Of a stretch of 64,000 nucleotides of DNA, positions 22,072 to 22,850 are shown piece by piece. Made by a program: the position numbers and the translations under genes. Positions within the stretch are counted from its first letter, which is position 1, and each line of letters opens with the position of its first letter. The notes under the pieces are model-generated. The model was given only the letters and a program-made list of their open reading frames with translations, did no database searches and was not told where the DNA came from. Source of the stretch: Saccostrea echinata (lineage: Eukaryota); the NCBI RefSeq assembly GCF_033153115.1, contig NW_026889803.1, positions 1,674,001-1,738,000 on the forward strand, in the 5' to 3' direction.

Positions 22072-22721
22072 GTTGGTGCACTAGTACTACACTTCCTTTA
22101 GCAGCTGTTTAGTATACTGTAGCCTTCAAGGTCCTTGCAAAGATAGAGTATAGCTTATTTAGAATTTCTTAAAAGGATACCATATATGTTATGTATGTCT
22201 TTGAGTTTGATATTTATCATATTACCTACAGTAAACACTAAAACGTTAGCGCCAATTTTTTAACAAGAAATAGAGACCGCGTCATAAACGCAGAACCTTT
22301 TAATGAATTCTCACCTAGGAATGCAAAAATCCGGATTTTCTGAAAAATCCGGATTTTGCGCTCCCTGGTGAGACTTTTCCCCCTTTTCCTTCCGTTTATT
22401 TTTCACTCATTTTTTTTCTTTGGTCATAATGTTAAAAAGTACTAATTATGTTAAGAAGACTCACCTGATCACTTAGAGAAGAATTAATTAGTTCTACAAC
22501 CGTGTTCGATTTTTTTTCCTTGTAGACGCTGTTACCAATCACCGGCACTTGTTTCTGCTGGTCGGCGTCCTATGTCCATAGAAATACAAACGCATATTAT
22601 TTCATATTGATGTTAACTTAAACCTGGAAAAGAAAAGAAAAATCAAATCTACTTGTTCAAATTAAGTGATATTATGAATTAAAATACGATTAAGATTGCT
22701 TGGATAAATAATGTCTCAAAT

Positions 22722-22749
22722 CAGGGACCTATGTACTTATAGGTCCCTG
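22722..22749. mobile_element. 28-bp palindromic insert (CAGGGACCTAT family) with perfect 7-bp TSD; probable P-superfamily excision footprint
   Basis: ctcaaat|cagggacctatgtacttataggtccctg|ctcaaat. Confidence 0.75.
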
Positions 22750-22850
22750 CTCAAATTTTCTTATAATTGCCGAGTTAAAGATATTTGGCAAAACCAAATT
22801 GGAAAATTAACTTCAACATATTTCAACTTATGTCATGGGACTGCACAATA

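Follow-up and report, generated by a model that had tools for sequence, protein, structure and literature searches.

The locus studied here raises the question of how a 28-bp palindrome came to lie between two identical 7-bp repeats in an oyster genome, and whether similar inserts nearby share its origin. The window, that is, the whole 64-kb stretch of DNA that was analysed (C54:1674001-1738000 within the 923-Mb assembly), had been reported in a first-pass annotation to contain five such inserts. Our reading of the window bore out their coordinates, their lengths (26, 28, 32, 29 and 34 bp) and the 7-bp repeats at their flanks. The features are given below; TSD denotes the flanking repeat, TIR the inverted end of the transposon, and scar assignments are putative.

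2848..2887, no strand: family-2 scar; TSD CTTTTAC, 26-bp palindrome at 2855-2880, TSD CCTTTAC (1 mismatch)
22715..22721 (left) and 22750..22756 (right), no strand: TSD copies of the 22722 scar, both CTCAAAT, perfect
22722-22749, no strand: family-1 scar, 28 bp; left arm matches TIR nt 1-16 except for one substitution, right arm matches TIR nt 1-12 in inverted orientation
32854..32887, no strand: possible decayed family-1 scar; arm resemblance, no recognisable TSD
32900..32931 (with flanks 32893-32938), no strand: unassigned palindrome, 32 bp; CA..TG ends, 12-nt arms
53826..53868, no strand: family-1 scar; TSD ATACTGG, 29-bp palindrome at 53833-53861, TSD ATGCTGG (1 mismatch)
60241..60288, no strand: family-1 scar, slightly decayed; perfect TSDs GTGGAAC around a 34-bp insert at 60248-60281

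The proposal that all five inserts are P-type scars was supported for the three that fell into family 1 (22722, 53833 and 60248), whereas the insert at 2855 belonged to another family and that at 32900 was unsupported. The end sequence CAGGGACCTAT, said to be common to three of them, was found in both arms at 22722 and 53833, but 60248 carried one mismatch per arm: its left arm had 1 mismatch to the TIR, and the last base of its right arm was A, not G (..CCCTA). With the exception of that right end, the window inserts started with CA and ended with TG. The CTCAAAT repeat of the 22722 scar agreed with the target preference of the family, T at position 2 and A at position 6. No informative ORF was detected close to this scar, for which a place just upstream of the PAGR1 5′UTR exon had been suggested. 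In the 53833 palindrome, a 17-nt arm and a 14-nt arm overlapped at a TA microhomology, and the same 29-mer was present identically at a second locus (L060). A decayed sixth insert had been suspected near 32855; the sequence indeed resembled the family-1 arms, but no TSD with 3 or fewer mismatches was found around 32854-32887.

When 3 or fewer mismatches were allowed, the first 15 nt of the TIR matched the window 8 times compared with 1.02 expected matches, and none of 100 shuffles reached 8. The 3-4 family-1 copies within these 64 kb exceed the genomic density locally and do not allow extrapolation, and they may reflect chance plus the choice of window. Accordingly, the density of about one scar per 13 kb that had been put forward did not extend to the genome, where family 1 has ~1 exact-ended scar per 1.9 Mb.

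Genome-wide census, junctions and arm lengths

The pattern CAGGGACCTAT-N(0-30)-ATAGGTCCCTG, with exact ends and spans of 22-52 bp, was run genome-wide; such a pattern is blind to joins at long microhomologies, by which the entire scar is lost. It matched 463 loci, and the reversed-pattern control matched 0. Widening the gap to 31-61 nt gave 13 loci (53-83 bp) and to 62-92 nt a single locus (84-114 bp), after which the next size class was that of the MITEs, so the length cap anticipated for footprints was recovered. The narrower claim that all inserts measure at most 2x17 failed genome-wide, because fillers lengthen the scars to ~52 bp or more. In total, 477 exact-ended family-1 scars were counted in the genome, of which perhaps 430-450 represent independent events.

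The first 50 of the 463 loci by genome order served as the detailed sample. We found that 48 of these 50 were independent by flank comparison, and that scar length varied between 22 and 52 bp, being most often 32 bp. Both copies of the TSD were kept around inverted TIR prefixes; the 7-bp TSD was perfect at 37 loci and had one mismatch at 7, giving 44/50 with one mismatch or fewer. These TSDs revealed a symmetric target preference (T at position 2 in 32/44 and A at position 6 in 36/44). Gaps of less than 100 kb between neighbours occurred 5 times among the 50 listed loci versus ~3 expected, which was not significant. At two loci, L063 (G000:C19:1036048-1036128) and L067 (G000:C52:8989665-8989736), two scars were seen side by side or nested within ~80 bp, which suggests repeated insertion and excision at one spot.

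The junctions were then compared. Thirty-eight distinct sequences were present among the 50 scars and the differences were confined to the junction, the heterogeneity that had been predicted for footprints. No filler was present in 22 of the 50 joins. The recurrent classes of 22, 24, 32 and 38 bp corresponded to the products predicted from palindromic microhomologies, or from a blunt join, in the tails: the 32-mer consists of 17+17 arms overlapping at TA (nt 16-17), the 24- and 22-bp scars have TATA and TATATA overlaps, and the 38-bp scar is a blunt 19+19 joint. Identical junctions had been named as an observation that would speak against footprints, and an identical 32-mer was indeed found at 48 loci; however, it is the simplest TA-microhomology join to be expected, and the 32-mers in the sample carried different TSDs. 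With 3 or fewer mismatches the 32-mer was found at 220 loci rather than 48, suggesting that decayed scars are several times more numerous. The fillers were 73% A+T, and copies of at least 8 nt of an arm were detected inside 8 of 13 long scars. Such arm copies are the signature of templated insertion known from Drosophila alt-EJ.

The 38-mer recurred in a different manner. A first look yielded 219 candidates for an interspersed host repeat (L029 and relatives, for example G000:C1:29575640-29575877, with empty copies L110-L112). Fifteen copies of this repeat carry the 38-mer between two copies of the TSD GTGTCAA, and ~25 other copies have a single GTGTCAA and no insert. The flanks of the scar-bearing copies were 94-100% identical among those fetched. 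Recurrence of the 38-mer is thus mostly that of one scar within a host repeat that was amplified after excision. No filled copy of the site, whether MITE or full element, was found through the 15 scar-bearing and ~25 empty copies. An apparent filled copy at C56:18902182 / 18909824 was rejected, as another element had inserted into the scar with a 9-bp TSD. At this place (G000:C56:18902278-18909837; L108, L109) the ~7.5-kb insertion splits the 38-bp scar and is accompanied by the 9-bp duplication TATATAGGT.

The arms themselves were bounded. In none of 100 sampled arms did the match to the 33-nt TIR extend beyond 20 nt; arm lengths had modes at 14 and 17 nt, and arms of at least 18 nt and at least 19 nt made up 31/100 and 14/100, respectively. 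Arm matches of at least 20 nt numbered 34 genome-wide and were mostly the 19+19 joint or close variants of it, in which the G at position 20 simply complements C19 of the opposite arm. Only 2 among ~950 arms in the genome reached 21 nt. Retention of 17 nt per arm, as had been assumed, was not confirmed, the cap actually being 19 nt of the TIR; arms of 18-19 nt are too frequent to be explained adequately by chance extension of a 17-nt remnant. One of the two arms that reach 21 nt belongs to a 54-bp locus (L070) in which at least 33 nt are kept at one end and 16 nt at the opposite one, an internal-deletion derivative.

A further indication came from a second copy of the 8.4-kb element described below (L085; G000:C7:1723500-1733499), which is 98% identical to the first and has a normal left TIR. 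Its right end, near locus position 9844, is without exactly TIR nt 1-19 and the TSD, and joins unrelated DNA; this looks like one-ended cleavage followed by deletion of the flank. The 19-nt arm cap and this truncation at nt 19/20 together point to a cut between TIR nt 19 and 20 on one strand. A donor cut with a 19-nt stagger is deduced from these products.

Parent elements and their transposase

The family-1 TIR, defined from MITE and autonomous copies, is 33 bp long (CAGGGACCTATATACTAACGGGATAGGCAACTC), and the scar ends are its first 11-19 nt. The 19-nt version of this end had 379 matches genome-wide, many of them paired ~488 bp apart. These dimensions are those of a MITE of ~488 bp (414-682 bp among the copies fetched) that has the 33-bp TIR and is 88-95% identical to the reference copy. 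Among 10 elements fetched, MITE-sized or 8,424 bp long, the TSD was perfect over 7 bp in 8, had 1 mismatch in one and 2 in another. Exact TIR ends of at least 24 nt numbered 107 genome-wide, corresponding to roughly 50-80 intact MITEs or elements, as against ~950 arms in scars. Scars are several-fold commoner than intact ends.

The 8,424-bp element (L020:501-8924) has family-1 TIRs and a perfect TSD, GTAAGGT. Its 484-aa ORF (L020:3973-5427, minus strand) matched Pfam PF21787 with 85.8 bits, PF21788 with 70 bits and PF21789 with 28.3 bits, all three above the curated cutoffs (TNP-like RNaseH_N, GBD and RNaseH_C). The GTP-binding insertion domain was therefore present by Pfam, and the ORF also matched the solved structure of Drosophila P transposase, 6P5A (E=7.4e-15). 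This genome does contain, as the first-pass annotation had anticipated, a full-length element that shares the scar termini, has a 7-bp TSD and encodes a P-type transposase. Judged by the catalytic core, the TIRs and the TSD length of these sequences, the parent is a P-superfamily element.

Two autonomous copies only were seen, L020, in which a 449-aa upstream ORF lies in a different frame and overlaps the transposase-core ORF, and L085, which contains stops. A related transposase (L082:5030-7741, minus strand; G000:C51) has an uninterrupted 904-aa frame with the same three domains, and in comparison with this single frame the split ORFs of L020 look frameshifted or spliced. A THAP domain gave no Pfam match in the 449-aa upstream ORF, the small upstream ORFs or the 904-aa relative, and the N-terminal ~450 aa of the transposase had no recognised domain. 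The THAP domain may be divergent or may be encoded by an exon that escaped recognition.

P-type transposases of several lineages were detected at ~20 loci of the genome. Those of L082, G000:C3:4574048 and G000:C25:407081 were 59-67% identical to the L020 ORF and had open frames of 894-904 aa, with one internal stop in the G000:C3:4574048 match. Around five other P-transposase loci (L082-L084, L086 and L087), no TIRs or TSDs were recognisable within 10 kb, and no link from these loci to further families, the palindrome at 32900 included, emerged. At L087, two identical P-transposase-like frames of 808 aa (G000:C81:2013209-2014546 and 2020683-2022020) lie 7.5 kb apart in a region that also contains a large inverted repeat; they are 26% identical to the L020 ORF and may represent either a further P family or a pair of domesticated THAP9-like genes. 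In addition, an exact 32-bp scar at G000:C9:26395376-26395407 was located 82 kb from the autonomous copy C9:26304873-26313296. Local hopping is known for P elements, and this single case of proximity would fit it.

Other superfamilies were considered as the parent. Elements of the hAT group have an 8-bp TSD, form hairpins on the flank and leave no TIR remnants, and hAT was rejected on these three counts. Tc1/mariner and Stowaway footprints resemble the oyster scars in that both TSD copies and some transposon-end nucleotides stay at the donor site, but they keep only 2-3 nt per end, and the TSD of Tc1/mariner is TA; Tc1/mariner was rejected for its TSD and its 2-3-nt remnants. The 11-19 nt kept per end in the oyster scars speak for a long stagger rather than for an enzyme of the Tc1 type.

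Excision and the alternatives to it

Taken together, the palindromes very probably mark former donor sites of a cut-and-paste transposon family of the P superfamily, whose excision scars have been inherited. The germline excision footprint reading, with which the annotation had begun, was supported by the capped lengths, the heterogeneous junctions and the parent element with its P-type transposase. In the mechanism we propose, the transposase would cut one strand at the boundary of the element and its partner at a point 19 nt into the TIR, so that each flank would retain a TSD copy followed by 19 nt of TIR sequence as a 3′ tail. These tails would be identical and not complementary, and the cell would rejoin them by end joining, whether bluntly (19+19 = 38 bp), at palindromic microhomologies within the tails, or after nibbling and templated fill-in. 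The expected product would be a variable junction framed on each side by no more than 19 nt of TIR, the second stretch being inverted, with a TSD copy at either outer edge. Since such scars are immobile, they would accumulate, and they now outnumber intact ends several-fold.

The palindromes might instead be ultra-short MITEs that the P transposase moves as units of 22-52 bp, the TSD marking each insertion. A 7-bp TSD at each copy is what that model requires, the exact 32-mer at 48 loci with differing TSDs could, taken alone, suggest a mobile unit, and the empty paralogous sites are compatible with insertion of a small unit too. Against it, 38 sequences in 50 loci that vary only at the junction would call for dozens of separate master copies; the lengths form a continuum bounded by arm length with no discrete subfamilies, and the homogeneous length and sequence families expected of MITEs were not seen in the 22-52-bp palindromes. 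Recurrence is seen precisely for the simplest of the joins, blunt or at a microhomology, and the 38-mer recurs mostly via the host repeat (15 copies) and not through transposition. Moreover, cleavage staggered by 19 nt would leave no duplex in any element that measures 38 bp or less, and such an element should not work as a cut-and-paste unit, and mobility of the Drosophila P element needs more than 100 bp per end (as cited in PMC1562414). We consider independent movement of the palindromes very unlikely. Internal deletion without cleavage by the transposase, through hairpin or replication slippage between the TIRs of a MITE or through aborted gap repair (SDSA) from a sister copy, could produce short derivatives as well, and the 54-bp L070 is typical of internal deletion or aborted repair. 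However, such a process predicts arms of any length to 33 nt and beyond, whereas the arms stop at 19 nt with 2 exceptions in ~950, and the near-empty gap between ~60 bp and MITE sizes also argues against it. As a general origin of the palindromes, it is extremely unlikely.

Excision of this type is known from Drosophila. The P transposase makes a 17-nt staggered cut that has been described as unusually long (PMC7776569), and excision leaves 17-nt 3′ tails that are identical, not complementary, and are joined by NHEJ or pol-theta alt-EJ (PMC2895639). Among P{wa} junctions, joins at (AT) and (TA) near the tail tips were the commonest short-microhomology class, with 14 and 5 isolates, respectively, for a genotype from which 68 junctions were sequenced (PMC2895639). 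The oyster 32-mer is the counterpart of these joins. The Drosophila P junctions and the oyster scars have in common both TSDs, bounded inverted TIR remnants and palindromic microhomology joins or templated insertions, and the core of the Drosophila transposase is homologous to that of the oyster enzyme (RNase H plus GTP-binding insertion domain). The oyster scars differ in that their arms are capped at 19 nt instead of 17 and their TSD is 7 bp instead of 8 bp. They are also natural, inherited, genome-wide and found outside insects, whereas the P{wa} junctions are laboratory events.

A TSD of 7 bp has been found in the Galileo lineage of the P superfamily (PMC3573991). Galileo and 1360 thus combine a P-type transposase with 7-bp TSDs, as family 1 of the oyster does, but the Galileo TIRs are very long and internally repetitive, whereas the family-1 TIR has 33 bp. 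A scar population is not mentioned in the Galileo paper (PMC3573991). The P-MITEs of Anopheles (PMC1562414) and BuT5 (PMC3698922) are similar to the present case in that a short non-coding partner shares the termini of an autonomous P element and is more numerous than it. In the oyster, in contrast, scars outnumber both MITEs and autonomous copies, and footprints are absent from these P-MITE papers (PMC1562414, PMC3698922).

Full-text searches of the literature gave no account of P elements in oysters or of P-type scars occurring naturally in populations of copies, which is weak evidence of novelty. The mechanism is already known; here it is met as a genome-wide natural record in a new host, together with the 19-nt stagger deduced from it. 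It seems on the whole probable that the long staggered cut of P-type enzymes is conserved outside insects and that its length, 19 versus 17 nt, can be read from natural scars in an assembly. To our knowledge, the cut geometry of relatives such as THAP9-type enzymes is largely unexplored. If the excision reading is true, a census of scars would give the cut position and the end-joining spectrum of any P/THAP9-type family without biochemistry, and hundreds to a few thousand short palindromes are being ignored by repeat annotation. The several hundred independent natural repair products would amount to an excision assay done by evolution. They would indicate that in this distant host the stagger is fixed at 19 nt, and would display the end-joining spectrum of the animal's germline, including microhomology, blunt joins and templated insertions. 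The excess of scars would mean that most past insertions of family 1 were later excised. Palindromes of 22-52 bp, which fall below repeat-masker size and lie near genes, could serve as markers of past insertion sites for population studies.

A second family and the palindrome at 32900

The insert at 2855 belongs to a second family, whose TIR is CATAGACCTAAAGCAAAGGG. Twenty-four short palindromes of this family were found genome-wide, with ends CATAGACCTA..TAGGTCTATG, heterogeneous junctions and 7-bp TSDs, and the 2855 scar differs by two substitutions from the 26-mer join class, in which two 14-nt arms overlap at GC. An 8.1-kb element (L080) has the family-2 TIR and a perfect TSD, CTCTCCC, and is non-coding, with no ORF of at least 120 aa. 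When the P transposase was used as tblastn query, no transposase of family 2 emerged from the window or from eight loci of that family. The assignment of family 2 to the P type rests on this anatomy and is accordingly a provisional one.

The palindrome at 32900-32931 could not be placed in either family. It starts with CA and ends with TG, and its left flank has the T2/A6 pattern that the P families prefer in their targets, features that would suit a P-type scar. On the other hand, no second paired occurrence of its 12-nt arms was found in 923 Mb, and its flanks, ATTACAA and ATTAAGA, differ by 2 mismatches, being equal at only 5/7 positions. Several dozen distinct and unrelated palindromes with arms of at least 9 nt are present in the same window. 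This insert is probably a hairpin of chance or structural origin with no relation to transposons, or else the scar of a family that has left no other recognisable trace.

Other features were noted in the window. A 32-bp palindrome with 14-nt arms (AAAATCCGGATTTT..AAAATCCGGATTTT) lies at 22326-22357, 370 bp upstream of 22715-22756; it is without a TSD and bears no relation to P ends. Long (TA)n microsatellites occupy 29564-29620 and 60306-60376, the second of which begins 18 bp past the right TSD of the 60248 scar.
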